A stretch of 40,775 nt of DNA, from NCBI GenBank assembly GCA_900088475.1, contig FLMG01002572.1:1-40775 (forward strand), read 5' to 3'. The stretch's first letter is position 1. Each line of letters opens with the position of its first letter. Positions 1,718 to 36,384 of this stretch are shown in pieces. The notes under the pieces were generated by a model that saw only the letters and a program-made list of their open reading frames with translations, made no database searches and had not been told where the DNA came from. This DNA is from Hyphochytrium catenoides. Its lineage: Eukaryota > Protista > Hyphochytriomycota. Position numbers and translations under genes: made by a program.

Positions 1718-4695
1718 TCAATAAAGCCGGATCCTCGCTGTGACGGCCTGCCGACAGATCGGACAGAACGACATCTGTGGAGCGCAGACTTCGCAGAGTT
1801 GGTGGCCGCAGCTAGCACGAGAGCGACGAGAGGGTGAATAAAGCAATCAGAAAGCAAAGGATTTCAACGGTTAGTAAAGCAAACAATGACGGTTGCACTC
1901 TCATCTCACTTACTTGAACGCGGTATTCTTGGGTCGCTCCATACACACTGCAGAGGGGAGGCAATAAATGTTAGTCTACCAGGGCTTATAATTATAGAGT
2001 CTCGCTTAGTCATAGTGAGGGAAAGGTATCAGCATAGGCACTTCCACGTGGACAAAGCAGGCAGAAGGGCATTGCACTGGATAAAAGCTAACACTCTAGC
2101 CGTCGTTGCTAACCTGTGCACAACTTTTCGTCAGCCATAGGTGCTGGCGGTGCTGAGGCTGGTGAGAGGGAGTGTGCGCTTGCCTATAAATGTGCCGAGA
2201 ACGTTTCGGCCATCCGAGCTGTTAGACACGAAAGCTGTGTTTATGGCGATGACTCGTCCTTACCGGTGAGGTGTGGAAGGATGGCGATATAGAGTGCGCG
2301 CTTACTCGGGGAGCAGCCGTCCCGCATACAGCACATTGGGGAGCACCAATGACATTAAATGAGGTGCAGCCCTGACATTGCCATTGCTAAGAAGGAAGAA
2401 GTAATAGAATTTAGCTAAGGACTTTGAACACCTAAGTAAGTATGCCCGAACAGGATACAGCCAAAGCTCTGGTGTACCCAGCAAGCGAAAGGCAGGAAGG
2501 GTGCGGGTAGATGTCAGGAAAAGGAGGAGCTGTTGCGGAAGTGAAGCGGTAACGATTCCAAAAAGACACTACAGCCTAAGCTCTGAGTACCTGTGTTCCA
2601 GCAGTTTGAGCAGCAGGTGGAATTGGTGGCGCGACCGGTACCCCCACAGGTGGAACAGGATAACCAGGCACGCCGCCCACGACCTGACCAGGCATGGCAT
2701 ATGCAGGAACACCCCCAGGGACAGCAGCGGGGACCACAGCTTTCTTTGGGGGCGGAGGCAGGACCTTGATGTTTGGTACATAGACGTCTGCATTGCGGGT
2801 CAAGAAATGGTGAGAACAAAGTTGTAAGGGGTCTATTAATGCCCCAGGCCATCCAGCATACCCCGGCATTTACATTTAGGTGAGAAAGAGCAAACTAGGA
2901 GGTTACAGGGAATAAAGCAAGGAAAAACCTAAAGGTAGGGAGGAGGGAGTTCAGGATAGAAGAATTGTAGCTTACTGTTCATTCGTGTGCCCAGTCTGAG
3001 TCTTTGAATGGCTTTGTACTGATCTGGAACCTCCATCAAAGCCCTGAGGGCAAAGGCTGGCAGAGGATTATGGGGGAAGGTTGTCACCACTCTATGGAAC
3101 TCCACAAACTGAAAGTTGTCAAATGTCCGCTGGGGCAGGCTGTCATCAAATTGGCGCATCATATCCCAGGGGCCATCACCCACGCCCACCAGCACGATGC
3201 TGAGAGGAAAGTTGCTGTACAGCGGTAGGGAGAAGCGCGAGAACATGCATAGAAACCAGAGATTAGTCCAGGCTGTAAGGGGCTAGCGCGTAACTTAAAC
3301 GCTAGGCAGTGCAGGAAAAGGAGGTAATAGAGTGATCGACAACGCCACGGTATAACGAAAAGACCCAGAGCGTGAAGCAGACTAGCACCCTAAGAGCGTC
3401 TGGGGAGTCCATAGAGGACCCTCGCCTTACCTTGCTCTGACAATGGCATCGACCGTGTCCTGCTCTTGGGGAGAAAACTGCCCGTAGCGCAAATCTGAAG
3501 AGCGTGTCACCTGGCCGTCTGCCACAATGACGAGAATATGGTACTTCATCGTCCTCTTAACGATGTCAACTGCCTTGTTGATAATCGGACCAAAGGAAGT
3601 AGGCCCAGCCAAGTTGACGTTGGGCACAATCTCGCGGTAGCTTTATATTGAGCGAGCAACAACGTTCCCACAAAGAGAAGAAGAGCGAGCGCAGGATTAA
3701 TTGGGAATTATGTGTGAGATGATGTCGCAAGGAGGTGAGCTATGCATGGCGAGAGCAGCGAAGGAGATACTGATGTAAAGCTCAGAGAAAGGAAGATTGC
3801 CGAATTCAAAGAGGTAAACGGGGCAAACTTTACCAGCTAAGAACGTTCTGGAAAGTGTGGCATGGCTCCTCGTTAGGAAGGAAGCCAAAGACTCCCATGT
3901 CGCCAGTGGTAGCATCTCCGAACCCATATGCAGGAATGAGCTTGTCATCGTCTGTCGAAGCACAGGAAGAGTGTCCGAGGTTAGACCGTAGAAAATAGAA
4001 ACGGAGTGAGGGAGAGGAAAGAGAAAGCGTGGGAAGAATTATAGGGCAAGGGAACGAGAAGGAGCTTGCGGTGAGACGAGGGAAGCCTCGAAAAGGACGC
4101 ACCAAATGGTTCTAATGTCTGGCCAATGGTAGCGATAGCCTGCTCGTAAGGGTTCATGGCTCCAGGCAGCACATCATGAAGGGAACGACCGCCAAACGTT
4201 CGCTTTCCCGTCCATTTGTTCGAGCTAGTGACTGCACAAATGCCAAGGTAAATGGGGAGACGAAGCCAACACCAGAAGCCTTGACTTAGGAAGAATGGCG
4301 GACTAGTTCAACATGTCAGAAAGAATAAGAGAACGTAAGGAAGAGGAGTGCTTTAGAGATGGACAGGTGTCACAGGGCCAGAGCCTGAGGTTGCATTGAG
4401 ATGAAAGCGACCAGCAGGTAGCCCAAAGAGAAAAGGGTAAAAGATGTGAGGCTTACAGTCGACGCCCAGGATGAGGTTACTGCTTTCGAGTCCGGATCTC
4501 TGCAGCTCTACACAGCACGAGGACAGTTACTTGCCTGGAGCTCCACGGCATCTGATCCCTTTCTCACTTCTCTTCTTTACCTGCTGTCACCTGATCTATC
4601 GTCTGAAACCTGTCAGCAATGGCTTTAAAGTTGATGCTTGTGTTCTTGGGAGCCATCCCGGGCCGCCGCCCCTTTCCGCTCTGATTGTTACCCAT
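1718..4695 (-). CDS. RGLG: RGLG-type E3 ubiquitin ligase: N-myristoylation motif, copine/vWA domain, Pro-rich linker, RanBP2/NZF zinc finger, C-terminal C3HC4 RING (11 exons)
   Basis: Spliced translation starts MGNNQS, then [126 protein letters not shown]; ends [41 protein letters not shown] (TGA 1720-1718). All introns GT-AG and in phase. Confidence 0.93.
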
Positions 4696-5056
4696 CGCTA
4701 CAGAGCTTATCGGTCGGGGTTTCCGCGGAGGTTAGCTACGAGCGATGTGTTTGCACGGTATAATAAAGACAACGGAGAAAGGTGCTTTAGAGATTCTGAT
4801 GGGTTGTGTCGTCTGCCGATGCTGGACTGAGAGCCTCACCGCTAGACTGGAACAGCGACAGGAAGAGAAGAGAGAGAAGAGAGAGAAAAGAAAGCCAGAG
4901 AGACAGCCCAGTGAGAGAGAGAGAGTTGTGAGAGAGAGAGTGAAGCTGGAGACTGATAAGAAAAGGAGGTCCCTGTAGGTCGTACGAGTAGGTTGCTATC
5001 CGTCAGAGGCCATTGTGGGCCCAAAAGGAGGTTCTACTTGTACTGCCAGAGCGCTG

Positions 5057-5059
<3 letters not shown>

Positions 5060-5109
<50 letters not shown>

Positions 5110-5174
5110 GAGAGAAGAGAACGAAAAGCAGACTGGGCAAGAGGCAGAACCGGCAACGCAGCGAAGAGATACAA

Positions 5175-5209
<35 letters not shown>
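5060..5209. repeat. (GA)n microsatellites (two tracts, ~5060-5115 and ~5174-5209)
   Basis: Directly visible AG dinucleotide runs upstream of the RGLG start. Confidence 0.95.
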
Positions 5210-5654
5210 AGACAACCCATCTGTCCAAATTCTAAAAGTCTCCAGCACTACATAGCTCTTCTTAGAAGAAGGAATACGACGATTTGTAGTGACAGAACTA
5301 CGGCTTCTGGCTGTTACTAATATTGTAGTCAATACTGAAAGACTACTCCACTCCCCCAACCCTTTAGGGGCGTGTTATACGACTATAATGGGAACAAACA
5401 TCATTAACGACCATGGTTTGTCCTTGCGCCAGAGCTCATCATGTACTATAGCACGCCTATCCTTCGTGTGATGTCTCTTCTTCTCCTCTCTTCTTGTTGT
5501 TGATATGCTGGCTATGACGGCCATGATTGATAGCAGTAGCGCCTTTCACCTCTTTTCAACGAGTACAAGCTATAACAGCCACAGAAGAGAGAGAGTAATG
5601 AATCGTCCACCACAAGACCACAAGAGAATGAGAGATGTGGAAGCGGAGGATAGG

Positions 5655-7226: not shown

Positions 7227-7699
7227 TTGCTGGAGCTAAACACATCGCTGTACCGAAAATACATCATCAGGGCAAGAGAAGGGGCACGGACTATCTTCCA
7301 ATTTCTAGAGGGCCAGTCTCTTCCGTTACAAGGCAGTTGGAGGGTATGGCGGCGAAGGATTGGACCCACAGACTTGGTATGGATGGTGGAACTCTTTGAA
7401 GTTAACAATTTTTATTTTACCGCCAGACAGATTAACGTTAAAGGCCGTATACCTGGCGCACGAGATATAGACCCCAGAACCATATGGGAAGGTTAGCCAG
7501 AGTGGCAAGAGATAGTGGAGGGCGATAAACAGAGTTTCAACGAGGTACACCGACCAAGGTATAATAAATATGGATTTGGTCCAAATGGGCGAAACAGAGT
7601 ATTTGTGAGAAAGGAGGGGGATGAAGACGAGGCCGAAGAACAGCAAGACAGAGAGCATGGGACACAACAGACCCCAAAAAGCCTTTCCGGAAAATTTTC
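7227..7699 (+). pseudogene. Possible decayed intronless ORF (TE or viral relic?), unassigned
   Basis: ORFs 7227-7496 and 7515-7699 are in the same frame, separated by a single TAG (..RTIWEG*PEWQEIVEGD..); the frame runs into the N-gap; no family recognised. Confidence 0.25.
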
Positions 7700-7712
7700 N
7701 NNNNNNNNNNNN
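7700..7712. other. Assembly gap (13 N)
   Basis: Run of n characters. Confidence 1.
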
Positions 7713-7912
7713 CTGTCTCGTTCAACCCTCTGTGAGTTCCCCATTCTCTCTGTTCCCTGGTTCGGCTTGAAGAAGCGCCCTCCTGACAGCGCCCAAGCAC
7801 CCAAGCACGTCAAAAAGAGGCAGCACATTGAGGGCGGGGGGACGAGCGGCGAGCAAGACAGAGAAAGGGAAAGAAGGGGAGGAAGAGAAGGTTACAAACT
7901 GCTGGCATAAAA

Positions 7913-7913
<1 letters not shown>

Positions 7914-7945
<32 letters not shown>
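7914..7945. repeat. (CT)n microsatellite
   Basis: Directly visible. Confidence 0.95.
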
Positions 7946-7947
<2 letters not shown>

Positions 7948-8640
7948 CAGTCTGCTATCATTGTCTTCTCTAACACGGCAGCTCGCTCTTTCTCTCCCGC
8001 TTGTTCAGCGTCCTATCCCTCAACGGCAACAATCATTGCTCTGCGGTGTCGTGCGAGGGATGTTCCCGCAAGCCCATAGGAAGCCCATTGATTGCTTCTC
8101 TCGCACTTTATCCTCCTCATCTTCTTCTGCTTGAGCCGCAGTTCAACATAACAGAGCACAAGCTATCAGCCGTCAATCTGACATCACGGGAAGAGCCCAC
8201 CTATCACCCTTTCTCCCTTCCTGTTCCCATCCTCTTTCTCTTGTCTCTCTCTCTCTCTCACCTATAAGTGGTTCTCGTCCTTCCCCTCGACTGTGTGAGG
8301 CAACGCAGATTTAACCTCCTGGCGCCTCGAACCTCCAGAGTTCGTGCTGTGTATCATCACTTGGAGCAGCCACTGGTTCGCTTCTCTTCGGCCCTGCGGT
8401 TCCCCATGCGCGTACGGCCTTTGTCTCTCTTCAGTCCATTGACCTCAGACAGAGAGACACGTCTGTAAATTAGCTGCATCAGTCACTCTTTCAAGGTTGC
8501 GGTGAGACGCTACATGCCGGCGATGCCTCTCAGGCGACGAATTCCACTCTCCCTTCCCTACTGACAAGAGAGACACGACTATCCTCTACCTCAGAGGCAG
8601 ACACGTATAGGCTCTCTATAGCCTGAGCTCCGCGCATGCG

Positions 8641-11600
8641 ATGGGGAAAGCCTCCGGCCCAATAATGCCAAAGTGTCCCGGAGCTGTCTTCGCAAGGCTC
8701 CCCGCCTATAATCCTTTCGTGGGGACCTTTCACCATGCCCCAAGGTACAACCTGTCCCTCTCTCCTCCCCAACCCCGCGTCTTACTGTCCGATGGTCTTC
8801 TGCACGGCTAGTGTCCAATCTCTCTTGCTCTGTCTCCGCGCTCTCGGGTCTCAAAGTTCCTTGAGGCTTAACTCCTCTTGGTCCCCATTGTCGGACCCTT
8901 CCGCGATGCTTGTCTTCTTCTAATCATCATCTTTCTGTCTAGTGCTGGCAATAGGAGCGCAGTCTACTTCGCGGGGGAGCTTGTAACAACGGACGAGCTA
9001 GAACAGCGAAAGAAGTTCAAGCATCATCCACTGACTGGCACCTTCCACACCCTGCCTGGCTTCTATGACCCTCTGCACCATGTGTGGCGGATTGGCATGG
9101 CCGAAGCCGCAGGAGGAGGCGCTGCAGGAGGCAAAGATGTCCACGAAGTAAATGATAAGCTCACTAGCAGTCTTATGAGACAGCATGACCTCCTCTCACA
9201 AAGCAAGAAGTCTGATGCAGGGCTGGATAAAGGGGGCACAGCGCCTGGCTTAGCAGGCTTGACGGCAATGGTGAGCTTTGTCCGCTTGCTCTCGCTTTCC
9301 ATTGGCCTTCGCTCTCGATCCTCTCCTCTTCCTTGGATCTAGCGAGCCAGAAAGCTCTCATCTTACTCGTTACGATCTTAGACTGTCGAAGCTCTTTCCT
9401 TCTTCCCCATCACCTGCTCCGTATCTCATCGTTCTGCTGTTCTGTGCACATGTGTCCACGTTGAACTCTAAGTCGAGTTGCTATGGTTCGTAGGTTGAAG
9501 ATGACCTAACTTCAGACGAGAGTCAAGACCTCGAGAGCAGGCCTATGACGGACGGAGAAGCTCAATCCCTCTCTGTATGCTCCTCAGATGCAAGTTCGTT
9601 GGCCTTGTCAATGTCAGAGTCCGACGAAGAGGCCATCGAGCCGGTAGATCAGAAGGACCTAGAAAAGGATGTTTCGCTGTTGAGAGGGAGACGTTTCAGT
9701 GATCCTCTGATAGTCAGGGCGACCTCTCTTTCTCCCCCACCTGTCAAATATGCTATGAGAAGGGCCTCTTCACTTCTTGCGGCACCCAGTCTCTACGCAG
9801 AGAAACCTTACCCTGACGGTTTTGTCCTTGAAAAGGCGGCGTTTCGCCCTTCCGACCCTTTGTCTGCTCCTCCGCCACCTCCGGCCAGGAGGAGACCTCC
9901 GCCGACGCAGCCACTAGCGAAAGTCCAAGGTTCAGGAGGTACGTAGAGTAGGCCTGCTCTGTGACGTATGGCTTTTCCCCTTCATGTCCTTTGTTGCGGT
10001 CTGTGATGCTCTTGTCCCTGTTGGCTTGTGCTCTGTCTTCCATAGACTACTCAGCTCAGATGCTATTGGTCCCTTCTGACCTTTGTTCTGATTTTTCGCT
10101 CAATAACAATAGAAAAGCAGAGGACCCGCCTGAATAGCACTGCAGGAGCAGCATACAGCAATGGAACTCGAGCATATCGGGATATTCCCGGAAATGAAGG
10201 GATGCATATAGAGACAACCGTGCCCTCTCCAATCTTAAGGGCTAGGACAAAGAGCGAGCTATCCAGTTCGCCTTCCCTTAGGAGACGGGTCTCAGCAGAA
10301 AATCTTCCTCTAAATAAGGCCTCCCAGCCACTATTTATGGTCTCCCGCCGTCCGTCATGGATCGCTGATGGCTCCCCAGATCTCGTTCTGAACGCCGCAG
10401 ACTACGGAGATGAAGCTGAATTATATGACGCGCTAGAGGTAAGACTCACCCGCCAATGAACTCTAGACAATCACATGGGCTAAGAATCACCTTTTTCTTT
10501 GACTTATCTACCTATCGACGTATCTACCCGTATAGGGGGCTGGCTATATCTCCACAGGTCACGGCTCCTTTCAACGAGTGACACGGTCTGACCAGGAGAG
10601 TGCCTCTTCTCGTCTAAAGAGGGCTAGCAGATCTGAGGCCGGAAGATCTGACCCTGGAACTCGCTTGAGTGATGAGCAGGAGCCTCCTGCGCGGGCGCTG
10701 GCATTGCACCGCTCTTCGAGCACTCCTGCGGGAGGCGCTGTAAGGAGTGCGATGCGGGATGGTAGATCTACCTCTCCTATCAGAGAGTATAGCCAGGGTG
10801 CGCCGCAATTGCCATCAAATCCCTTCATCATCCGTCGAATGTACGACACTAGCGAGATCAGGTAATGACCCCAAATTCAGTCAGTTATGCCGTAGAACAC
10901 CAAGGGCTAACACACTTCGTGCTGGACTTCTTGCTCGTTTGATCTCTTTACGTAGCGCTCTCCCTTTGGGGCAGACCTTTCAACCACCGTCTGCGCTTCT
11001 GGTTAATGACCATGAGGTCACCCATTCCAGCGCTCTGCCACCTTCACCCAGGAGGCGGAGCGCCAGTGCCACAGCTGAGATGCGTCCGTACTTCATTCAT
11101 GAAGTGGCAGTCACGCGCGGTTATGACATAGAGCCAGGGGATGGTACACTAGGAGACGGCAGCTATGCGGTGGTACAACCTGCAGTAAGGAAGAGTAACG
11201 GGCTGAAAGTGGCCATAAAGCAGGTGCACAAGAAGTATCTATTAAACGACGAGGAAAAGGCTGCAGTGAGAAGAGAGGTAGAGATCCATCAGAGATTGAG
11301 ACACAAGCACATTGTCAGGCTGTATGAGGTCTATGAGACGCAAGAGTACCTCTATCTGGTGAGTTTGCCCTTTTGACCGCTTCCCTTCTTTGCCATCATT
11401 TCTAGTTCCGTAGCTGCATGAGACTAACTCAAACATCTGTGTATACTTGTCGCCCTTAGGTCATGGAGCTAGCTTCTAGAGGCACGCTGGAATCCGTTTT
11501 AAGGCGACATCGACGTTTCCCGGAGTCTTTTGCACGCAGGGTCGCTCAGCAGCTGATGAGGGCCGTGCTGCACCTACATGATCATGGTAAGCGCCTTCAG

Positions 11601-12648
11601 CTTCCCCCATCTTCCATCCATGGCTGCCGCGTCTTGTCTAGTTGAGACACTATTGAGGCAGATATCTCTCCACCCCACTCTCCTCAGACAACCTCTTCGT
11701 TCCTCTTATACGCTTCATCTTGCTGCCGCAATATCTGACGGCTGTCCAATCTTCCTTCAGGTGTGCTCCACTGCGATCTCAAGCCGCAGAACATTTTGCT
11801 GGCTGATCCGCCCCGACGGCCGGGCAGCCCTAACGTTCCCAGCGCATCTTATGACCTCATGGTAGGAAGTGCCCGCACCATACCTATCTTTCTTATGCTG
11901 AGTTGGTGCCTTTGGGTTCCCGCCCTCTTCTCCCTTGTTGGACGTGTCGTCGTGCTGTGTGAGTTGATAAATCAGCTGACTGTGTAGACCACTGACATCG
12001 CTTTTGATCCTCTGGGATGTCATACGATAGGAGGGAGATCTGCGCACACTAGATGTTAACTTGAAGCTCTGTGACTTTGGGCTGGCCAGAAAGGTGCCTG
12101 ATGTCCGCTTCTATAAGATCACAGGGGATGTGCATAAGGTACGCACTTATCAAAAATCTCTTGTCTATGGATGCCGCAGAATCCTACACTTCCGCCTAGC
12201 TGCTGCCGCCATAGCGATCAACTTCGTTTTGACCCTGTCACTCTCCACCCCGTCACCGTCTTGGGCTGCTTGACCTTAGCTTAGAGGGATCGACAATCTT
12301 ACGTGTCTGACACTCCTTGGTCGGTTCCTCTAGGTGCCATTCACTGGTGTTACGGGCACTCCGGGATACATTGCCCCAGAGCTAATGTTACGCCAGCCAT
12401 ATGGCAAGCCAGCAGATATGTGGAGTCTCGGCATCATACTTTATGAGATGCTTGTGGGATACACGCCCTTCTACCCTCCTCACGCTTGCCTGGAAGAAGC
12501 TGTGGTTTTTGACTCGAGGGCCTGGAAAGGCATAAGCGATGACGCACAGGATTTAATTCTTCATATGCTGGACCCAGACCCCGAGACTCGCTACACTGTG
12601 CATCAAGCCTTTACGCACAGTTGGTTTGAGTTAGCTTTCTCCTTCTAA
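8641..12648 (+). CDS. CAMK-group Ser/Thr protein kinase (non-RD, HCD) with long low-complexity N-terminus, ~856 aa, 10 exons; start codon uncertain
   Basis: Exons 8641-8744, 8955-9270, 9494-9938, 10113-10438, 10536-10861, 10956-11358, 11460-11586, 11761-11861, 12031-12138, 12334-12648 join in phase. Motifs [99 protein letters not shown]. Confidence 0.92.
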
Positions 12649-14117
12649 CGATTCCGCAGAATGTCCAGAGTAGCACGCCTACATTGGGCCTTAGCCTGCA
12701 GGGAAACACGTCGTTCTCTTGTCTGTCTTATTCTTAGCTCTTTCCTAGGTCTCTGTTTTCCTTTTCCTCTCTCCTTCCGCGTCTTTTATTTAACGAACTT
12801 CTTTGAGATCCAAATGCATTGGCTACACGCTCGTCTGTGTGCCTAGAGGAAGTCACACAGAGTGACAGACAAACAGCTTGAAGAGCTCTATAACTTATAG
12901 ATAAGCTTAAACAATCGGAGCGGACCAACAGACAAAATCGTTGGCGCTTCATTCCCACACATATAGGTATCTGCCCCTTTGATCTAATGAACTTTTTGCC
13001 TAACGTGGAAGTTGTCGTATGAGATAAGCCATAGCAAAGTTCCTGCCTACTGCCTAGTCCTTGATTACCTATCGCCGTTGACTCAGTGCAGTTCCTCATA
13101 TCTAAGCCATGGACGGATGGGAAAGTTATGACCCAAATGGGACCTTAAGGTCAACAGGAGGTGAGCTGAAGTCATCAGAAAGGTTGGGCTACAGCCTTCA
13201 AGGACCGAGTCTTTGGTCTGAGAGGTCATCTGCTCTCATCCGATATGGTTCTTGTTGGCGCCGATGGGCATGAGCTTGAGTAGGTGATAGGTACAGGGAG
13301 GCAAGGTGGATGGATCATGATGATTATTGGTCACTAGGCTCACCATCCTCCAATTGTCCGTACTTTCCTCATCCTTCTTTAGTGCTCTTGGTCTCTCGAT
13401 TTCTTAGGCGCACAGCTTCTCCTACTTCCGTTGAATGCATTGCCTGCAGAAGCATGGCGTCCGTCACGCGAACGATGGATGGGACAAAGTTCGTGGCCAC
13501 ACCCACAACCATCACAAGGGCGTAAGGTGGAAGTCAAGCACGCGGTGTGCCAACTTCTGCCTTGTGTTGGCACCTGGCCCCAACAAGTGGGCGCTAGGTC
13601 CACTTCCGACTAAGGAAAAAGGCAATCCAGACCCCGCAAAGCTGATAAGCTAGCTTTGTTCATCCCTTGCCTATCCCGCCTCAAGACCACATCTCTGCTC
13701 ATCCTCCTTCTGTTGTTGAGTGTGGAAACGAGTGCTGTCCGGCTCTGCGTTAACCAACCGGCAGTCATTCGTGAAGGGGAGCGACGGAAAGAGCACCATC
13801 GTACACTTGAAAGGACTGCTTTCGCTAGGCGAATAGACATTGGGCCATGGAGCTAAGAGGGGCGGCTGGAGGTGTGAGTGTGTGTGGAATGGGGGATAGA
13901 TCCTTCTTCGCAATGTTAAAGCAAGCTGAAGCTATCGGATTTCATAAAGATAGATTGTTGAGAGTGATCCGCTCACTCTTTTCCAGGTATATTATCGTGA
14001 CAGAGGTCGGTATTGTACAACAGAATGGGGAGCTACACCTTGACAGATCAATCCCGGGCGAGAGACATGCCGCAACTACACAGCAGCAGAGAGGGCGACG
14101 TTTGGAGGTGGTGGCTT

Positions 14118-17100
14118 CTAGAGGGAAAAGCGCTCCTGCAAAGCGCTTCTTCCCTGCTCTTCTCCTGTCCCATAGTTTTCCGCCACTGCTACGTCCACTG
14201 ACTTCGACAAGTTGGCATTATAGTAAAGGAAATGATGGTACTGGAAGTAAGCCAAGATCTCGACGAAGCCAACGTCACTGCTTTGCTCCTCGTTTCCTCC
14301 TTCGTCGCTTTCTCCTTCCATCATGGTCGCCGACCTCAGCACTGTGATATTCTTCTCGTGGGTTGGTCTTACCTCCCCTAAGGTCAAACCTACTACCTGT
14401 GGTGTCTCTCCCTGCGACTGAGACACCGCTGGAGAGGAAGGATTGGGTTCCGATGGGGCGACGTAGGACTTCCTCTTTTTTAGGAGCTCCACTTCCTTTT
14501 TGTGGAACGCTTCCGCCGCAATCTTACCGTCCTCGGCAGTGAGCTTGTTCTTCTTTTTCGCTGCTGCTTCCTGCTCAGGCGCATGACAGAAGCAGTGGGA
14601 TTAGCCACCGATCACAGGAAGAATTTTAAAGCGATGAGTCCGTCCGTGCGCGTAGAAGTGCTTCAAGGCAGAAGAGCATAAATGGACGAGCCACTGAAGA
14701 CGCACTCTCTACCCAGAAAAGATGTGGGGAAGAGAACCGAAGCATATCCTACCCTTTGTGCTTGTCTAAAGGCATCAATGCCTCGATCCAAGGCCTTCAC
14801 AAGAGAGAGTATCATATTGTTGGAAGATCCACGGTTCTTCAGACTCCATCCATCCTCCTAGAGCAACCATAACGCGATCGGTTGACATAGGAAGATGGAA
14901 GTCAGTCTGAGCTATAGTAGCCCACGGGGGGGCCACACTTCGTTGAACATCCAAGGCTTATGTTCCTATCCTGCGGTAGTCAACCCACTGTCTGGAGCTC
15001 TCCCCGTAGGGGCATGGTAGCCCCTCATCAAACCCATCGTCTTCTCCTCTCTCACATTAGGCTTCTATCTCGTTTGGTCATGAAACCTTTGGTGCCCTCC
15101 TGCTTGCCTGTCCCCTTTTTGCTCCTCTATCGCCCTTAGTCCTTACAGTTATTAGAGTCGCACCTTGAGAAATATCTTGAGCATGCAGCTTTCGTAGCCT
15201 TCACTCTTCGGTGGAAAGGCATGCACAACATCTTGGGCGTACATAATGTTCAGCAGCTGCGGAGTGCGGTAAAGTAGGCGCATTCGTGCGGCAAACCTAA
15301 GGCCCAGAAGGGTTAGGCAACACCAAGAGGGTCATCAGCAACTAGACAAAGAGGTAGTTTAAGGACCACCGGAAGGGGAAGTGAAGGTTCACTATGACAG
15401 TCGATCGGTATCCGTTGGACTAACTAAGTAAAGGTAGGCATAAGAAAGAGAAGCCGCCTAGAAGGGGTGTGAAGGACGTCAGCTACGAACCAAAATTAGC
15501 GAGCTTAAGAATGGAGGCACCTGAAGAAAGTTACTCACCCGGCATCACCAGCCTTGGGGGTCCCGAAGCCCACGACAGTAATCTTGTCAGTGGAAAGCCC
15601 CATTGACTTGACCTCATCCCCAAGCTTGAGAGCAAGCACTTGAGATAGCATTCCACCCATCGAGTACCCGGTAATATGGATTGGGGTACCCTCCTTCACA
15701 TACGACAAGAGAAGCGAGAGAAGGCCTTCTTCCATCATGTCTTGGAAATACTTATATACTGTCTCATGAACCCGCACAGTCTTGGCTTTCTCAATAACCT
15801 CTGGAGGGGCGGATGGAGCTTTCAGGGAGACAGAAGCAGGGTAAGTTCTTTATCTACCACCACTCCCGCTATCATGCCCTTCTAAAGGTCACCACACAGG
15901 TCTTTGGACAGGTAAAGAGTAGCCTGGATGGCATGACATGGGTCTCTCAGGCTCCAGACGGTAAATTTTTAAGGCGGAATACGAAAAGAAGCTGGAGAAA
16001 GCTGAGACAGAGAGGAGGCTCACCATCCTGCGCAATACGGTCCACGGGTTGCAAGTCCATAAACTCTGTAAGCCGTCTGTTCAAACCCATACTCCACATA
16101 TTCTCAAAAGACTGTCGAATGCGAGTTCTTTCGCCATCAGTCCAAGCTTTGGAAAGAGGCCGCCAAATCTGATCGAACAGAGCTGTAGCAGTCTGCCAGT
16201 CGCCTTAGATTGTGTAGAGGGAAAAGGCAGAGGAGGGATGAGCCAGGCCGCATAACATGGGAAAGGGACGTTATAGGAATGCTAGTCCATACACCAAAGA
16301 ACTTAGGTAACTTCATAAAAGCGTACCTGTCAGCGGAGCGGAGACAACTTCTAGAGTAGAGGTCCACGATAAATTCTTAAAGTCTGACATCATCTAATGG
16401 ACCAAGGCGTTGGCGTCAAAAAGGTCCTTAAAGCCCCTTCAACGATCAAGTAACCATTCTTCCCTCTATCTCCTCGATCGTCCTCCCTACCACGTTCCTC
16501 ATTGCCAAACAGAATTTATCTCCTAGCTCAGAACCCTCCCCTAGCCCGAACACTCATCATTTTCGCCATGGCATCTCCCTGGGTCTTACCTGTCTGAACT
16601 CCTCATCAGCCCAACCCGACCAGAAATCTCCCCAGAACTCCTTGATAGTGTCAGGTGTACCAGCGGGACTCAGGACCACCAGGACCTGAAGCAACCAACA
16701 AGCCTTTACTTAGTCTACTTAGTGGGTTCAGTATGTAGGCGGGGACAGAAACCCCACACGCACAACAAATAGAGCGGAAGCATATGTACCTCTCGCTTTG
16801 AACTCCCTTCAACAGTCTCCCAGACGTTGCACCTAAGGAAGCGTGAGAGCATTGATAGAAGGAGAAGGTAAGGCATTTACAAATGGGGTCGAATGAGAAT
16901 AACGCCGCGATCAACAATGTAAAGGTTCCCGATACCTGGCGCTATGGCTTGTGTTCTTGAATATGGCCTTCAAGTTATATGTCAAGCCGTTGGGGTCTCG
17001 CCTGTTCGGCTTCACCTTCACTCCTAACGAACATAGAAAGCCGTAAGCCGTAATCGTAATAGGAGCAGGGTCGTTTAACAGCGTCCGCAGCGCCTCATGA

Positions 17101-19571
17101 AAATGATCAGGGTCAAGTGGCAAAGACAAAAGTGAGGACCCTCATTAGCATGTGACCGTACCAACGTCCCACAGTACGTTTCTGTTGCCATCAGCATCCT
17201 CGTTGAGCACATCATTTTCCTTCATCTACGAGGAAAGGGTTAGCTGAGACTGTTCCTTCCTGCTCTAACCCCTCTCTCCTGTTATGGTACCATTCTCCTA
17301 GTTGTACATACACCGGGACTACTTTGGCGGCTGCCGACTTATCTGATAGCGTGTAAGACCTCCACAAGTTCCATCGGCTTACCATTGAAAACTTGGCTGA
17401 TAGGAGGAGTAGAGGCTTTGAGCTTCGAAGTATCTGATTGCCGTAGACAAAGTCCTTGTGCCTTCTAATCAGCAAAGTCGATACCTCTTTCTATTGATAG
17501 CACATGGATTAGAGGAAGATCATGGTGAAGGGTTCAACTCCAATCATCAGCAGTGGCAATTCGAGAGCTGAAGGCCTCCAATTAGTTAGTCGAGCTTTGT
17601 CTAGGGCTTCTGGATACCTCGAAAGCCCCAATAACGTCTAGATCTTGGGTCACAGGTGTCCTAAGCTCAATCTCCTCTCGTACAGTGACGAGCACATATC
17701 TGCCGCACAGGACGGACATTAGTTCGAAAGCAGGATCGAAGACCCGTGCTAGAATCGTACTTACCTCTGGGCGCCTTGCACGTCTGCCAGCGTAACATGT
17801 ACTCCGTATTGCTCTTGTTGTTGGTGGGCCAGTCGAATGGCACTCGACGGGTTAAGGCCTCTCCCGTGTCTAATGGTAATTATGAAAGCACCTGGGCACC
17901 AATCCTTCTTTAGACGGCGAAGGATTCCTGGCGTTTTAAGGAACATTACACCTATATTGAGAGGTATGTCAATGTGTGCCTCAGGAAAAGTGGGTTGGGA
18001 TAGATGGCTTCAAGAATAGCACGAGTCGGGGGAAACAGGATGAGAAGGGACAAAGAGGGAGAGAAAGGACATTGGGTGCAGACGCAGACGCTAGAGCAGA
18101 AACCCCGGTCAGCAAAGACTTCAAGAGAGGCAAGCTTGAGACGGGGAGGTCATTTAAGCGACAAGAGCTGAACACCTACCCTTATTATCGTCCTTGTCAA
18201 GGCTCAACTTCCTCCTGGATCTCGGCACGAAGTGATCGCTGACCAATGCCCCCAGAAACAGAAGGGCATGATGTCTGACGGGGGACAGAGCACGGCAACA
18301 TGCACGGAGGAGAAAGAGATATTCCTCCACCGTGAAAAAAGGAATAGGTAGGATGAACTCCTGTGCCGCCTTGGATTCGTCTAGTAGGCCTTTAACAATA
18401 CTCATATGCCTGCTCTCCGCCTTTGAGCCACTAACAATTGCGTTGATTTCCTCCTGCATGATCAGCGTTATCGGCAGGATGGATAAAGTCAGAGGAAAAG
18501 CCGGTAGTGAGGATTGAGCTTTTGAGGTAACAGGAACGTAGGGACAGCATGGAGAGGAGGTCGCAAAATGAACCAGGAAAAGGCGAACTAGAACTTCCAG
18601 CTCTCCCCGCGGCCGCTCAAAAGGTGTAGTCCTTCACTCACGTGTAGTCGTTCTGCCCAGTTCTTGTTCCTGAAGAAGGTGCTGACATGGCGAAGAAAGG
18701 GTTGAATGGACTCTTGGCGATGGAGATAGATCACCTAATCGACAAAGAATTTAGGGTCCCCCCTTGTTGCAGGAACCATGCCTCTGTCCTTCTTTTGACA
18801 TAACTTCTCTGTCTTCAACCCTGCTTCCCATCTAGCACTGTTCCCTTTGCCCCTCCCCCTTCGATGCGACAACACGCCGGGTCCTCCTTCTTTTGCACCT
18901 CTATAATTTCCTCTTCATCTTCTGCGCTGATCCAACTTCTCTCGTGTCTCATGGATGGAAAGGCTACACCACCCTATAATACATACCGCATAATTGTTTC
19001 TGACAAGATTTTCTGTGAAGGCCGCGGGCCGATTCCCGTTAGACCTTCCTTCAACCCACTTGCTAAGCTCGTCGTTCAGAGGGACTACGGTGCACCCAGC
19101 TGTAACTAACGCTAGACGTCGCCTACCAATATTGCGCTCAACGAAGGCCTGACCGACGAACGTGTAGAAAGGGTCAGTGATAAGGGCTTAGCACAAGCAC
19201 GCAGGAAAGATATACAATAGAACAAAGGATGTAGCCCAGAGCCACGTAGGTAACGAAGATCGGCAGAGAGAGGGGATGGAAAGCTGCCGGACCACCAGTG
19301 AGACGAACATAAAAGGACTATCAAGCCCCCACCTCGCTTGGGAGCTTTAACAGCCAAAACCAGTGAACGAAGGGAAAGGGCTAACTCATGTTCTTCTAGA
19401 GACATTGGAGAGCACAAGTGGCGAACGCACCTTTAGTTTATCTTCAGTCTCACCCAAATTTGCCGGTGGGACACTTTTATCGAAGAACTTGTCAATGTAT
19501 TCATCGGTCGTGTGGTCAGCAGTGGCAGCCGAGTAACCGACACTCTTAACGATCGATTGCCAAAGCGACAT
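14118..19571 (-). CDS. Fusion protein: N-terminal degenerate phosphopantothenate-cysteine ligase (PPCS/CoaB)-like domain + C-terminal class-3 (fungal-type) lipase, ~845 aa, 17 exons
   Basis: Exons 19571-19431, 19148-18987, 18734-18642, 18453-18180, 17951-17765, 17699-17618, 17490-17383, 17225-17162, 17023-16936, 16832-16790, 16685-16590, 16393-16327, 16203-16024, 15800-15539, 15296-15164, 14857-14753, 14570-14118 sum to 2538 nt with no internal stop. PPCS-like: LALVTAGCTVVPL, YAVIYLHRQES.QPF.RH, IPFFTVEEYLFLLR, LFLGALVSDHFVP, DWCPGAFII, LIRRH. Lipase_3: VLVVLSPAGT..IKEF.GDF, VRVH, IHITGYSMGG, VVGFGTPKAGD..FA, NIMYAQDVVHAFPP..EGY, YFQYHHFLYY. Confidence 0.82.
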
Positions 19572-21617
19572 CTTCTGTTTCTTCCTCTCTTATGCTTCTT
19601 CTCCGCTTCTGTCTAGGCTCCGCTTCGAGACAGATGAGGAAATCAAGGCTAGAAGCAAGCCTCCTCGACTGACGGTGACACAGAAGAGGACCGATTGTTT
19701 AATGCTCAGGATTGCAGTGTAGTCCGTGCCACGATGCAAGCCCAGGTGCTGTTGATGGAGTAACGTCCGGAACAGAGTAAGACCGTGCTGGGAGCATCAC
19801 AGTGATCGACGAGTAAAAACTTTTCTCCGTTACATGTCCGCTTGCCTCTTAGGTGGCTTCAGGAGCTCTGTTTCTGTCAGCTTGCAGAGTCTGTGCGGCG
19901 ACAGTGCAACCGGCTCCTCTCTCTGCCAAGCTCTTCCTTTCCCTTCTGATGGAAGAGCAGGCTACGGGGATTTACGACGTCGGATGGAGTTCTGCGTGAA
20001 GGTGCATCACGGTGGTTGCAGGCGAGACAGAGGACTAGACAGAGTGCCTCGAATATGGGACTTGCTGCTAGTCGTTAATAGTGAATAGGGAAGACAGAGG
20101 CTGAATGAACATAAGAGTTGAGATACACTACTCGATGGACTCACTATCTTCTGCCCCAAATCATGTCATCTCTCCCTCTGCTTTCCCATATCTCCACTGG
20201 ACTATATCCGCTTTATCTTATTACTCTGACTCGCTTGCGGTTGTTACTCTGACTAATCTCCTCCCACCCATCAAACAAGCCGAGAATAAGAACATTTGGT
20301 CAGAACGGAAACGGACTTGTATCTGACATTCTTCCTGTCTTAGTCGCTTATTCCTAATATCCAGATCAAAAACTTTTTATAACCGCTAGCCAATATGCAA
20401 AGGACTGCGCTATCTTATATTAACCCCGACAATGAACTCGCTCTGCCCCTAGAATAGTCGCATACTCGGGCAGATGACAGAGAGACAACATTACGAACTG
20501 GTGGGGGAGAGAGATGGCGCTCAGATATTATTCATAGGAAGATTCTTAGCTGGAGTTGAGTGACGGTGTGGGCAGTGTGGATGACGATGGATGATTATCA
20601 AGTGCTTGAGCAGCCAAAAGGACGGAGCACTGAGCTCGTGGTGGCGTCCTTTCTAAGCGTCACACTCAGACTGTCACCATCACTACCATAATAGGGAGCA
20701 GATAAAGGCCGACATTGGTGCTTTCTCCCAGATCTGATCTATGTTCTGTCCTCATCATGACAACGCCGCGACAAGGGCAAAGCCCTGGGGTTCCTCTTAC
20801 TATCACCATCTCAAAAGTGCTGCTGCATTGTCTTTGACTAATAAGCCATGATAGACTATCGCTTTCTTCTATACACACACTCGCGCAGTCTGCCCTTCTA
20901 AAGTTCGAAGAGAGAGAATTGCACTCACATTCGTCCCACAACATTGTCATGGTGGAGCAGCAGGACAGACACGCAAAGCTTAGAAAAGGTTAACGGATTG
21001 TTCACGATATAGTTAGGCTTCTAGATAGCTCTTGACGAAGGAAACGCGAGCCTCCCACATGGGTCACACCTCTTTCTTACACAGATAATTCTCAAGCTTA
21101 TACTTTGTGCTGTCCGCCTGGGCGTTTATAGCGCAAGATGTAACCAAAGAGCAACTATAGCACCGCCACTATGAAACAGCCCCCGGTTATCAGAAATGTT
21201 ATCTTGAGGCTGCGCGACCCGTGATACTTTACGCGTATGGAAGCGGATTGGCTATCATGCCACGATTCCATGTCCATCTGGGCAGAAAAGCCTGGCGCAC
21301 CATGTGATAATACCGTGTGGAGTCACACGTTGCCTATTGATGTGCCACCAAACGTGTGATAGCCCCTAGTCCCTGTGCTTAAGCGTCCTCCGGGCTCACT
21401 ACCGAAGAGTTTCTAGTACTGGGAATGTATGGGCTTTCGCCCCCGCTTTTGTTGGGATCCCTTTGCTTTTGCGAAAGACGATTTCTCTCACGTCGGCACG
21501 CGTACCTGGAGAGATCAACCAGCGTCAGACTCATGAACTCTACTAGGCCCTACAAGCCTCCATCCCTTACCATGAGAGCGGGCCTACGGCAAGAAACACC
21601 GGAAAGCCTACATCTAG

Positions 21618-28452: not shown

Positions 28453-29406
28453 TTTGAGGGTATGTTCCGGTTCTCATCAAAAGAAACGTCCGCCGCGGGC
28501 AGAACGAAGGGAACGGATACTCGTATGGGCTTCAAAGACTAAAGCTCTGACTCATGCTGAATCTCCCACCTCTCTCCCTCTCCCTTTCAACCAAGCTTAG
28601 CCTCTTCTACCTTCCTCTGGACTTCTTGCCCACCGCTGTCTCCACGCTGTCTCTGTGAGGGCGGAGGTGGAAGACCCAATAATCTTCACCAACTTGTAGG
28701 TGCTATCAGTGAAGGACGCTAACGGCACTCTCTGGCCTCTGACTGTTGTACGATGAAAGTGTACAACTACAGGCAGATGCCCTTCGTATTACTAATCCAG
28801 AGACGATTCCTGATCAATGAGGAAAGAGTATTCTTCATTAGGGGCTACTACTAGACCCTCTCACCTTCACCGTGGAACACTTCTTCACTCTCTTGTCCTA
28901 AACCCAGCCTATGTCTCTCTCACATTCTCACATCTCTCCCTCGATCTGTCTCTTAACTTAGCCGTCATCTCAATCTATAAGAAACTGTTATCTCTCCCTC
29001 TGTCTGTTTTGGTCCTCACTCTGTCTCTCATTGATCCCCGTTATGTTTCTTGTTTTGCGCCATCTGTATGAGAGCACAACAGGGCAGATAACCAAAACAG
29101 ACAGAGGTCATGAAGACTTGGCAATACCATGCGAAGCTTCGCATCATCGGCTCATCGGATGTGGAAGACATCTGAATCTCCAGATGTGCCACTGGGAAAG
29201 CTTCACCATATTCCGCATATTAGCGAACGCACTTGTCAGATTCCCCCATCTGGACAACTGTGCTACTCCTCGTGCCCCGCTAGTGGACGTCATTAGTGGA
29301 CAAGAGGTGTTCCTCTCCGATTACCTAAGTTTCCTACAACCTTAGAGCCGCAAAATTCTCAATCCACCCATAACTTGACAACGAAAGCGAGGGCCATCTT
29401 GGCAGC

Positions 29407-32222
29407 ATGTCCACCGCTGGTGGCGGTCCCATCGTGAGGTTGCGGATAAGGACACTCAATTCAACCAATCACACCGTAGAGGTCTCACAATCGTCAACTG
29501 TGTCAGACCTCAAGCAGCAGGTAAGAAGAGGATTTCAGGTGTTCTCTGCCTTCCTTAGACCTTTTGTTTATGTGCTTATACTTTACGTGCTCAGGTACAG
29601 CGTGCAACCGGCATCGTCATTGCACGACAGCGGCTGATATTTCAAGGCAAGGTTCTCAAGAATGATAAGAGCATTGAGTCATATGCTCTTCAAGATGGCA
29701 ACACTCTTCATCTAGTTGTCCGTCCTGAGGCCGCGACTAATAATGAGGTCTGCAGCATTTTAAGGCATCCACCTTAGACCTATCTCTCCAATGGCCATTT
29801 CTTCTTCTGTCTTTCTCTTCCTGTACAACTCTCGCAGGCGCTTGATTTGCGGAACCCAGACTGACTTGACTCTCTTTGTTCTTCCCTCACTGTATGCTCA
29901 CTGATAACCGAACCTTAGTCGGCCCAGAGCTCTAGGGAGAATGCCGCCCGCGGTGGCTCTTCTTCAAATACGCGTTGGCCGCCGTCCCAAGACACGTTCG
30001 GGTCTGAGGCCTTTTTCGTCCCCCAGGGGGTGCTAATGGGCGCTGCCATTTCAATTCCTGGCCTTGATGGACTGAACGGGCTTATCTCTAACGTCATGAA
30101 TGCGGTGCAGCAGCAGGTGCAGGGACAAGAAGCACCTCAGTTCCAGACCACTCATGTCGTAATGGGCTTTCCGGCTCGAGGGCCTGGTCCGTGGCAGGGA
30201 GAAATGCAGGAAAGACAACAGCAGTCATCGTCATCCTCTACCGCTACTCATAGAAATCGTAGAGCTTCAGACACCGCCCCTCAAAGAAACCATGCAGCAG
30301 CTCCTACTGCACCACCTACGGTGCGCAGAAGCTACCGGACTTCCAGGTCTGCTCAGCCTGCTGGACCGAACTTCGAAGCGTCAGCGGGTACCGCAGGCGA
30401 AGGGCAAGGCAGGGGAGACCCCCTATCTGGCACTATTTTGGTGGTAGAGGCGACCACTGCAGGAGACGGAGGCCCAGGGGAGCCCTTCATGGGCGCGTTA
30501 GGAGGGAGCATGAACGCGCTATTCAATCAGGCTAGAGAGGCAAGACCAACTAGGACTCCAGCTACGAGTGGCTCAGAGAGAAGAAGTCAAACATCAAGAC
30601 AGGTGCACCGTGATTCTACAGTCTTTCTCGTCGTTATTATGCCATTCACCTATATTTGAGAGTGCCTTTGCTAGCATTGAGCTCTGGTACTAAGGGTTGT
30701 CTGCCCTGAAGGGGCCATGTGTTATGCCCCTTGCAGTGAGTCGGCCTTGTAACACGTTATTATATGTAGGAAGCCGCCCAGAGGGTGATGCAGTTCAGAC
30801 AACACCTTCTTTCGATATCAAGCAGCCTATTACGGCTCAGTACAGACCTTCGCTTTCCGAACGCCTCCAGCCCTGCCAATGTAGCGCCCACCGTTGAAGC
30901 CGCTTTGCAGCAGCTGACTCCTTTACAGGAGCAAATATCTTCTGTCTCCTCATTGCTGAGGGAGATCCCGACTCTCTTCGGTCCTTCTCCTCCCTCCGCT
31001 CAACAGAACGCGAGGCCACCTAGCCATACCGCAAGAGCTAATAACCAGCCAGCAAGGGTAAACCCTACGTCTAGAGAAGGTCAGCAGACGACAAGACAGA
31101 GTGAAGGAGGGGAAAGGGTAAGGTCCTTGGAGGAGATTGCCCATTCCTCCCTACCTCGCGTTTGGGGTACAGGGCTACCGGAGAGAGTAGAAAACCTACT
31201 GCGTACGATGGGCTTCCCGGTCCCTTCTGTTGCGACGTCTGTTCCAACGTCAAGAGCTCCCTCCTCATCGCAGAGCGGAGGCACAAGGGGTGCCTCGTCC
31301 TCCTCACAATCATCTGGCGTGAGCACAAATACCCAGACGACATTGAGAGACGAAGGGCCAGGGGGCACTCGTGTCGTGATAATCAACTCGTCGCTACGGA
31401 GGCAGATGTTTCGCCTCTTAGAAGGCCTGGTACAGAGATCGGGCATAGACTTCATGCGAAACCTTCTCTCAGGGCAATGGAGAGGGCTCGACGAGCCTCT
31501 TAGGTGGTTGCAGAGGGAGATGGTGACGGGTATTGAATCTCTACCTCGCCTGACGGGACAGAATGCTCCAATATGGGCATCTGTTATCCTGGAGATATTA
31601 AGAGAGAGTCTAAGAAGTCACAGCGTTCCTGATCAGCTGAGGGCGGCATTGGGCGAAGAGAGGGCCAGGTGAGAAGAATGGAGGTGTCGTCATCTATGGC
31701 TCCTGGGTGGCTTTTCCGCAAGCTCCTGTCTCTGGGTCTTCCATAATCTTTTTGCTGGACCCTCTTATGTTCTGTTTGCAGAACATGCCATTAAGCGCTG
31801 ACCGCTGCTTTCCTTTACTGCCTGTCTGTCGCTTACCCTTCCCTTGTGCGCACTTATTCTCTTCAATCAGGCTTCTCATTACGGATGCTTTTCTGCCGGT
31901 CACACCCGCTGTGAGGCAATTTGTGGAATGGCTGTCAGCCCTTCCAGAAGCTAGGGAGGGGCAGGGAGACTGGCTACCAGACGATGAGATGGAGAAGTTG
32001 GCCAGGATCCTACACTCTTGTCTGTCAGGCGTTCGCTCTGTTATTCTACGACAAAACTTCCCACATTCAGCGGAGCTCCTCAGCGTCTTTATTGCTCACA
32101 TTTACCCTGCCATGGCGTGCAACGGCCGAAGTCGGGAGCTGGCCGATTTCCTCCTGCAAGACCATGGCTCCATTGACCGGGTTGTTCATCAGAGTGCAGC
32201 TAAGAGGAGGAGGACTGAATGA
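29407..32222 (+). CDS. Ubiquitin-like-domain protein resembling BAG6/Scythe (N-terminal UBL, long Ser/Pro/Gln-rich region, C-terminal basic NLS), 5 exons
   Basis: UBL: LRIRTLNSTNHTVEV....TVSDLKQQV....GI....QRLIFQGKVLKNDKSIESY.LQDGNTLHLVVRP (no terminal GG); downstream exons ~29919-30602, ~30770-31668, ~31871-32222 are in phase; ends AAKRRRTE*. Confidence 0.8.
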
Positions 32223-36200: not shown

Positions 36201-36287
36201 GTACTCAGGGGCCGATGGGAAGACAAGGAATATAAAGACGCGGTCCAGGCATTTTTGGCGAGAGCGAAAGGAAAAGCGAAGGCCTAG
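33205..36287 (+). CDS. ECI2: Enoyl-CoA delta isomerase 2 (ACBP domain + crotonase domain) with Arg-rich mitochondrial-type presequence, 10 exons
   Basis: ACBP: KLKLYALYKQSTEG.CNTKKPGAFDFVGKAKWEAW...DLSKEDAMKRY; crotonase: [58 protein letters not shown]...GQSPEGCSS.TFP.LMG...ASEMLLLGRK. An in-frame upstream ATG at 33130 is an alternative start. Confidence 0.93.

Positions 36288-36381: not shown

Positions 36382-36384
<3 letters not shown>

Follow-up and report, generated by a model that had tools for sequence, protein, structure and literature searches.

PPCS, an enzyme of coenzyme A (CoA) biosynthesis, is a functional dimer in every case known (PMC12985681), and its active site is closed by a lysine loop from the partner subunit (PMC7794376). 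In the eukaryotic enzyme (human numbering), N59 is strictly conserved and catalytically important, D183 is a metal ligand, R55, A179 and A180 contact phosphopantothenate, and S198′ and K231 contact phosphate; P211-K212 is likewise strictly conserved in eukaryotic PPCS, with K212 among the ligand-binding residues (PMC12985681). In mycobacterial CoaBC, where the PPCS fold is part of a larger protein, CoaB depends on the partner domain both to dimerise and to be active (PMC7794376). Here we describe another fusion of this fold, found in a 40,775-nucleotide stretch of Hyphochytrium catenoides DNA (contig FLMG01002572.1; the whole stretch is called the window below), in which one gene joins a PPCS-like domain to a class-3 lipase domain. 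The gene adds a new and divergent member to a family that is catalogued and functionally undescribed, and its architecture is not new to the databases. Its product would, in the reading that we regard as the best overall and as probable, be one soluble 851-residue protein in which a dead PPCS fold is the non-catalytic partner of an active lipase.

Gene model and fusion junction

The gene model was built by reading the minus strand of positions 13800-19900, listing the open segments in three frames and then joining the exons. The 17 exons between 19571 and 14118 (Table 1) splice in phase into 2556 nt, or 851 amino acids and a stop codon, and the 16 introns (65-306 nt, mean 181 nt) are all of the GT..AG type with fitting phases. 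The ATG at 19571 is the first to follow an in-frame stop, and the N-terminus that it opens, MSLWQS.., agrees with the start M(A/E)LWGTL of the relatives. An earlier note on this DNA had joined 17 exons in phase into one open reading frame (ORF) of ~845 amino acids; the exons and the frame are borne out by the splicing and by full-length alignment to intronless relatives, and only the length was slightly short of the 851 found. The peptides quoted there (LIRRHKDFVYGNQILRSSKPLLLLSAKFSM in exon 7, GYSMGG, AQDVVHAFPP and YFQYHHFLYY) are all present, the phase-0 junction intron has the donor, branch-like site and acceptor that were claimed for it, and the PPCS-like fold does continue via the spliced junction into Lipase_3, in a single ORF at four related loci.

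The spliced protein was compared at full length only locally, against fetched proteins. In this comparison (local BLAST) its residues 1-827/831 are colinear with intronless relatives of 842-976 amino acids at 33-37% identity, with E-values down to 0, and an end-to-end alignment covers 37 family proteins. Seven of the 16 exon junctions lie in conserved blocks and are gapless at the splice point relative to the intronless relatives: four (E2/E3, E7/E8, E11/E12 and E14/E15) are gap-free throughout the displayed alignment stretch, while near the other three (E8/E9, E12/E13 and E15/E16) the only indels are small ones a few residues off. Given colinear exon matches and full-length relatives, these alignments allow chance to be dismissed as an explanation of the spliced ORF. 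A pseudogene or an assembly artefact was also considered and ruled out, the ORF being intact across 17 exons and most family-invariant residues being kept.

The intron at 17382-17226 splits the best-conserved stretch of the family, between LLLLSAKFSM and MKEND. Across the junction (residues 331-371) the Hyphochytrium protein is 63% identical to the family, a value that falls to 44% over the lipase and to 28% over the PPCS-like domain; its junction identity to individual members is 56-71%, gap-free, and it retains 12 of the 14 family-invariant residues of the signature LLLLSAKFSM(M/L)KE.D..NEDA.GN.NV. The 842-residue orthologue P0134 reads ..LLLLSAKFCMMKENDILNEDA.. through the site of this intron, and in its AlphaFold model the last PPCS helix is one helix (308-342) that passes through LLLLSAKF into the first lipase strand. 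Furthermore, the fused protein is a single uninterrupted ORF in all four fetched loci (842, 847, 945 and 855 codons in L001-L004, respectively). Because the junction is gapless and conserved and the ORF is continuous in four other genomes, we conclude from the sequences that one gene gives one fused protein. The fusion is conserved, ancient and apparently obligate.

The PPCS-like and lipase domains

Residues ~27-330 of the Hyphochytrium protein align by local BLAST with canonical PPCS proteins of 300 amino acids at ~30% identity over ~300 residues (E ~1e-35). When single exons were searched against PDB chains with phmmer, exons 2, 4 and 5 matched PPCS structures in colinear order: exon 2 aligns with residues 74-122 of yeast Cab2 (E 0.0022), exon 4 with residues 139-192 of human PPCS (1p9o, E ~1e-6) as well as with Cab2 and the near-identical PPCS sequence 7edz_D, and exon 5 with residues 212-261 of human PPCS (1p9o, E 0.07, weak alone but colinear). 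Pfam gave no DFP match on single N-domain exons of the window; the orthologues P0134, P0175, P0152 and P0151 pass DFP (PF04127) at 29-48 bits against a cut-off of 22. The family profile spans residues 48-364 of Cab2 (E 1e-47) and 23-310 of human PPCS (E 1e-45). Structure models were made for P0134, which stands in for the Hyphochytrium protein, and its model matches PPCS structures with target-normalised template-modelling (TM) scores of 0.72-0.79. Among these, 7edz (a human PPCS complex) and 6ai8 (Cab2) score 0.72-0.76, with E ~5e-21.

In a maximum-likelihood tree the 16 fused N-domains, that of Hyphochytrium included, split from 33 canonical PPCS sequences with support of 100/99 and in 100% of bootstrap trees, a single clade that fits one origin of the fusion. 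The Hyphochytrium sequence and P0185 stand on long terminal branches in this tree, and the exact place of the former within the clade is unsure. Of the 23 family-invariant N-domain residues, 19 are kept in the Hyphochytrium protein; the domain is thus constrained and not decaying. By these alignments and this tree, the N-terminal third is a diverged paralogue of eukaryotic PPCS. The two best matches of the exon-4 search, P0001 and P0002, proved to be long proteins built of tandem repeats, each matching weakly at 16-17 places, and were rejected as spurious and unrelated to PPCS.

To list what has been lost, the Hyphochytrium N-domain was aligned with 15 family N-domains and 17 canonical PPCS sequences, and columns at least 88% conserved in the canonical set were read off. 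The catalytic Asn (human N59, in DNFS) is present in 17 of 17 canonical sequences and in none of the 15 family members; Hyphochytrium has Gly81. Invariant in the 17 canonical sequences and lost in Hyphochytrium and the family alike are the second Gly of TSGGT (Cys66 in Hyphochytrium), the Glu of PLE (Asn72), V-R (Ser-Lys, with K77 as the R55 equivalent), N-F of DNFS (Gly81-Arg82), the Lys of V-P-K (Gly232, the K212 equivalent) and L-E-T of FKLET, where Hyphochytrium also has Arg251 for the Lys (human K231). Both the Asn and the Leu of AN.L are gone in Hyphochytrium, and the Asn across the family. The equivalent of A180 is lost (Leu202) and that of A179 kept (A201), and the HKIQS loop that carries S198′ has no equivalent in Hyphochytrium; HKIQS is absent from the family too, where the corresponding loop varies in length and sequence. 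Nucleotide motif I, TSGGT, reads T-A-G-C-T in Hyphochytrium and TSG(S/A/V)(T/A) in the family; motif II, V-P-K-L-L, reads T-P-G-I-L, with P-N in the family.

The elements kept in Hyphochytrium and the family are mostly those of the core: T-x-G of the P-loop, P-L, G.R, Glu93, the YAVIFLHR..S..PF strand and F..(Y)L, together with A201, Asp205, Pro209, Pro231, Trp241 and His324. At the metal Asp (human D183) Hyphochytrium has Asp205, in LVSDHF, and the family has Asp in 8 of 15 sequences, Glu in 4 and another residue in 3. It should also be noted that Lagenidium giganteum encodes a canonical PPCS (P0125, N0F65_002768, with TSGGT, DNFS, AAAVSDF, HKIQS and FKLETD) besides its fused protein P0152; hence, for L. 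giganteum at least, the fused gene does not encode the enzyme of the pathway. Judged by its residues, the N-domain looks catalytically dead for PPCS chemistry, a pseudo-enzyme, and the loss of the catalytic residues makes a non-catalytic role likely.

In the C-terminal part, exon 14 alone passes Pfam Lipase_3 (PF01764) with 34.1 bits (cut-off 22, E 3e-8), and the orthologues score 33-46 bits. The nucleophile elbow GYSMG holds Ser581 and the acid strand AQDVVHAFPP holds Asp644. The Ser and Asp motifs of the orthologue align with GHSLGG and RDIVPHLPP of Rhizomucor miehei lipase and with Aspergillus niger FaeA, the orthologue's PSDTVHAFPP falling on ERDIVPHLPP of the Rhizomucor lipase. The putative catalytic His, His813 in YFQYHHF, does not vary in comparisons of 29 and of 36 family sequences. 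All structural matches of the modelled C-terminal half of P0134 are class-3 folds, namely FaeA (target-normalised TM score 0.58-0.60), Rhizomucor lipase, plant PLA1, Yarrowia Lip2 and EDS1; a helical insert (residues ~430-560) and the stretch from Asp to His are modelled at low confidence. These matches identify the C-terminal part as a class-3 (Rhizomucor/FaeA-type) alpha/beta-hydrolase with Ser and Asp intact and a putative His. A non-catalytic lipase of the EDS1 kind was considered and rejected, because the protein has both the Ser and Asp motifs and the invariant His. The Hyphochytrium protein shows no hydrophobic N-terminus and no segment with a Kyte-Doolittle mean above 1.3, from which a soluble intracellular enzyme would be expected.

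Spread of the family and setting of the Hyphochytrium gene

Searched against 1.8 billion representative proteins, the exon-4 query returned mostly ordinary PPCS, plus P0134, which matches at the same position as in the Hyphochytrium gene model. A search with P0134 gave 37 clusters of 595-976 amino acids that share the architecture, many of them with PF04127 and PF01764 precomputed, and a search with its lipase part (residues 345-842) gave 44 clusters, all of the fused family; no lipase-only relative was found among the proteins of 463-1473 amino acids in the latter search. The named members carry database names such as 'Fungal lipase-type domain-containing protein', 'Lipase (class 3)' and 'phosphopantothenate-cysteine ligase', and come from Phytophthora, Peronospora, Plasmopara, Pythium, Globisporangium, Lagenidium, Saprolegnia, Achlya, Aphanomyces and others. 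Examples are SPRG_12558 of Saprolegnia parasitica (P0175), N0F65_007175 of Lagenidium giganteum (P0152), and PITG_05669 (P0183) and a 'Lipase (class 3)' (P0162) of Phytophthora infestans. Aphanomyces stellatus has two copies of the fused gene, P0177 and P0198.

The statement of the earlier note that no PPCS-lipase fusion was known thus did not hold, since at least 44 protein clusters with this architecture stand in public databases. The architecture is already catalogued, one of the outcomes that the note itself had named as refuting its reading, though a literature search that included the fusion, the Pfam pair and the locus tags found no paper describing the PPCS-like/Lipase_3 family. The DFP/CoaB and Lipase_3 domains that the note had expected both appear, in Pfam on the orthologues and in the fold matches of P0134, and the search for the same architecture elsewhere that it had recommended was successful, with all named members oomycete. 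No near-identical or same-lineage protein was present in the large protein sets searched with exon 4, P0134, the lipase part and exon 14, and a scan of JGI metagenomes returned no related contig.

The Hyphochytrium copy and the oomycete fusions have the same domain order and share the junction motif LLLLSAKFSM(M/L)KE.D, the degenerate PPCS motifs, and the lipase motifs GYSMGG, D.VHAFPP and YF.(F/Y)H(H/D)F. In contrast, its gene has 16 introns where the four relatives checked have none, and its P-loop (A-G-C-T) and FKLET region (R for K) are more eroded. In a midpoint-rooted tree it occupies the longest branch, outside all oomycete sequences. The copies also differ between the lipase Asp and His, where the other 29 sequences have three CCHC-like zinc-knuckle motifs with invariant Cys/His ligands; Hyphochytrium has none of these ligands, the columns being replaced or gapped, and exon 17 has a low-complexity stretch rich in Lys/Glu and Ser/Pro instead. 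Of the 32 invariant tail columns it keeps 12, all outside the knuckles.

Downstream of the fused gene and tail-to-tail with it lies a multi-exon protein kinase gene (8686-12645, plus strand). The kinase is orthologous to the one in the same position at two intronless environmental relatives, L001 (5958-7805, minus strand) and L003 (8984-11263, minus strand), its exons being 51-89% identical; among the conserved parts is an N-terminal motif outside the kinase domain. From these matches, the microsynteny of kinase and fusion is conserved across a deep divergence. The L001 and L003 lineages branch beside crown oomycetes in the tree, and the shared position of the kinase suggests that the Hyphochytrium sequence is kin to them.

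A copine-domain exon (2932-3282, minus strand, E 1e-18) and a ubiquitin-like exon (29374-29634, plus strand) belong to ordinary eukaryotic neighbours. An acyl-CoA-binding protein (ACBP) segment at 33279-33914 (plus strand) is followed by an enoyl-CoA hydratase/isomerase segment at 34433-34714 (plus strand); the two probably form one ACBP-ECH (ECI2-like) gene, ~14 kb from the lipase gene and with no link to the fusion shown. Long (CT)n/(GA)n microsatellite tracts (~4900-5300, ~7800-8000, ~36200-36500 and ~39500-40700) create spurious SLSL/RERE frames on both strands, and a short run of N (~7680-7700) points to a gap in a draft assembly. Scans for tRNAs and with Rfam found nothing.

Table 1. Coordinates of the fused gene in the window, and of the fused ORF at four related loci
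Feature	Position	Strand	Remarks
Whole coding region	14118..19571	-	851 codons + stop; ATG 19571-19569, TAG 14120-14118
Exon 1, aa 1-47	19431..19571	-	MSLWQS.. start
Exon 2, aa 48-101	18987..19148	-	TAGCT (canonical TSGGT), PLN (PLE), EGRS (DNFS); match to Cab2 74-122
Gly81 codon	19047..19049	-	Position of the catalytic Asn of PPCS (human N59)
Exon 3, aa 102-132	18642..18734	-	VIYLHRQESIQPF, conserved PPCS core strand
Exon 4, aa 133-223	18180..18453	-	PPCS central helix; LGALVSDHFVP (canonical AAAVSDF), Asp205 kept
Exon 5, aa 224-285	17765..17951	-	TPG (canonical VPK), ITIRHGRG (canonical SFKLETD)
Exon 6, aa 286-313	17618..17699	-	From splicing and family alignment
Exon 7, aa 314-349	17383..17490	-	Last PPCS helix ..LIRRHKDF.. 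running into LLLLSAKFSM; contains LIRRHKDFVYGNQILRSSKPLLLLSAKFSM
Junction intron, phase 0, 157 nt	17226..17382	-	GTAAGC ... GCTAAC ... TAG
Exon 8, aa 350-370	17162..17225	-	MKENDVLNEDADGNRNV.., carries the junction motif on
Exon 9, aa 371-399	16936..17023	-	First strands of the lipase sheet
Exon 10, aa 400-414	16790..16832	-	From splicing and family alignment
Exon 11, aa 415-446	16590..16685	-	VLVVLSPAGTPD..FWGDFWSGWA
Exon 12, aa 447-468	16327..16393	-	From splicing and family alignment
Exon 13, aa 469-528	16024..16203	-	Helical insert; conserved DGE.TRIRQS
Exon 14, aa 529-621	15539..15818	-	Lipase_3 core, GYSMG elbow; Ser581 codon 15663-15661
Exon 15, aa 622-666	15164..15296	-	AQDVVHAFPP; Asp644 codon 15232-15230
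Exon 16, aa 667-701	14753..14857	-	From splicing and family alignment
Exon 17, aa 702-851 + stop	14118..14570	-	YFQYHHFLYYN; putative catalytic His813 codon 14237-14235
Fused ORF, related loci	L001 3322-5850; L002 1234-3777; L003 6001-8838; L004 6001-8568		L004 = Saprolegnia parasitica

Possible roles and comparison with known systems

In the reading that we favour, the lipase would be the catalytic part of the protein, most likely an intracellular acyl-ester hydrolase acting on acylglycerol or phospholipid, and the PPCS-like fold would be its fixed structural partner, serving in dimerisation or in positioning or occluding the lipase. The two would be rigidly connected if, as in the model of the orthologue, a single long helix leads from the end of the PPCS fold into the first lipase strands, and the PPCS-like fold may still hold a ligand of the phosphate or nucleotide type. 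Hydrolase activity, substrate class, cytosolic location and a structural or regulatory role of the N-domain are all inferred. A dimerising or positioning role appears the simplest, because known PPCS are all dimers and the CoaBC partner is needed for CoaB dimerisation.

Several points weigh against this reading. The gene structure is known here from genomic sequence alone. Both structure models are of P0134, with a mean predicted local distance difference test (pLDDT) score of only ~64, and in both the region of the catalytic His falls below 50; that His, which neither the Pfam model nor the PDB alignments reach, is assigned by invariance, and dimerisation is likewise a deduction. A separate canonical PPCS in the Hyphochytrium genome is an assumption. 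Finally, T-x-G, G.R, Glu93, Asp205 and Arg251 (for K231) are surviving pieces of the phosphate and nucleotide machinery, so that residual or altered ligase chemistry may still occur.

A lipase gated by a metabolite would make different use of the same parts: a pocket of the N-domain would take up a nucleotide, 4′-phosphopantothenate or 4′-phosphopantetheine, CoA or acyl-CoA, and would switch the lipase through the rigid linker. The survival of ligand-contact elements (T-x-G, G.R, Glu93, Asp205), the constraint on N-domain and linker and the obligate fusion speak for it; furthermore, CoA and acyl-CoAs inhibit mycobacterial CoaB, apparently at the active site and with an effect that grows with chain length (PMC7794376), which indicates that a PPCS fold is able to bind such ligands. 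However, the equivalents of R55, A180, S198′ and K212, all contacts in the described enzyme (PMC12985681), are lost, the loop equivalent to HKIQS varies across the family in length and sequence, and a purely structural role accounts equally well for the conservation of the N-domain, ligand binding here being hypothetical. We therefore consider gating unlikely. Much less likely again is a bifunctional enzyme, in which the N-domain would still be a ligase, either a true PPCS or a nucleoside triphosphate-dependent carboxylate-amine ligase with a new substrate. The full-length PPCS fold, the metal ligand Asp205 and the retained parts of the P-loop would suit such an enzyme, and automatic annotation does name some members phosphopantothenate-cysteine ligase; against this, none of the 16 sequences examined has the catalytic Asn, further losses take in HKIQS, the second P-loop Gly, E-T of FKLET and the Lys of P-K, a canonical PPCS coexists with the fused protein in L. 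giganteum, and the fused N-domains form a separate clade in which the long terminal branches lead to the Hyphochytrium sequence and P0185.

The least credible of the alternatives, and a very improbable one, splits the locus into two adjacent genes, a PPCS-like gene whose frame, read through the junction, stops near 17212, and a lipase gene that starts from the ATG at 17225. Exon 8 does open with an ATG right after the acceptor, and reading through the 157-nt intron meets no in-frame stop before 17214-17212, for which the chance is estimated as ~0.08, from (61/64)^52. However, the flanks of the intron join without a gap into the most conserved motif of the family, the same stretch is a continuous ORF in four other genomes, and donor, branch-like site, pyrimidine tract and acceptor are all canonical. 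Read-through would also append 56 residues that nothing in the family alignment matches and would cut the predicted continuous helix, and there is no intergenic room for a promoter. The residue after the junction is Leu instead of Met in Peronosporales and Pythiales; an internal start at this position is hence not a general rule.

If the preferred reading of a dead PPCS fold partnering an active lipase is right, a CoA-biosynthesis enzyme fold, stripped of its catalytic residues, has been recruited to the N-terminal side of a lipase as a partner that is apparently obligatory, and the fusion has been kept across all major oomycete orders sampled, including important crop and fish pathogens, as well as in the more divergent eukaryote of the window. 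The annotation of family members as phosphopantothenate-cysteine ligase is probably wrong, and metabolic reconstructions should not assign the PPCS step to the fused gene. The family offers a clean test case for a pseudo-enzyme domain serving a hydrolase, and the intron-rich, knuckle-less Hyphochytrium copy points to the PPCS-like core, the linker and the lipase triad as the indispensable parts. Should gating be true after all, this would be a lineage-specific, metabolite-controlled lipase that ties lipid mobilisation to CoA/acyl-CoA status in oomycete-like organisms.

Set beside eukaryotic PPCS (human 1P9O/7EDZ, yeast Cab2 6AI8; DFP PF04127), the N-domain shares homology and fold over the full length, as well as the core residues, the Asp of AAVSDF and the C-terminal ..H.. 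helix; by contrast, the catalytic Asn and most substrate and nucleotide contacts are gone. Moreover, eukaryotic PPCS is free-standing, whereas the PPCS-like domain of Hyphochytrium continues by its last helix into a lipase and belongs to a separate clade. With class-3 lipases (Rhizomucor miehei 3TGL, Aspergillus niger FaeA 1USW and the plant DAD1-type PLA1 7X0D) the C-terminal part has in common the Pfam match, the GxSxG elbow, the Asp strand and, in the model of the orthologue, the fold, although identity is only ~20-25% across ~130 core residues. Unlike these lipases, the fused protein has a large helical insert after the first sheet (residues ~430-560), a long insert between Asp and His and a PPCS-like N-domain, and it is devoid of a secretion signal.

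The known fusion of the PPCS fold is CoaBC (Dfp), which resembles the Hyphochytrium protein in linking the fold covalently to another enzyme domain. The NCBIfam model coaBC_dfp has a cut-off of 219.7 bits, and its matches, confined to the CoaB part, reach only 28-44 bits; the NCBIfam models are uninformative on membership, being bacterial models under whose cut-offs canonical eukaryotic PPCS itself falls far short. No window exon and no orthologue gave a match to a flavoprotein/PPCDC domain. In CoaBC the partner is an N-terminal flavoprotein PPCDC of the same pathway and CoaB is active, whereas in the Hyphochytrium protein the partner is a C-terminal lipase and the PPCS part is without its catalytic residues.

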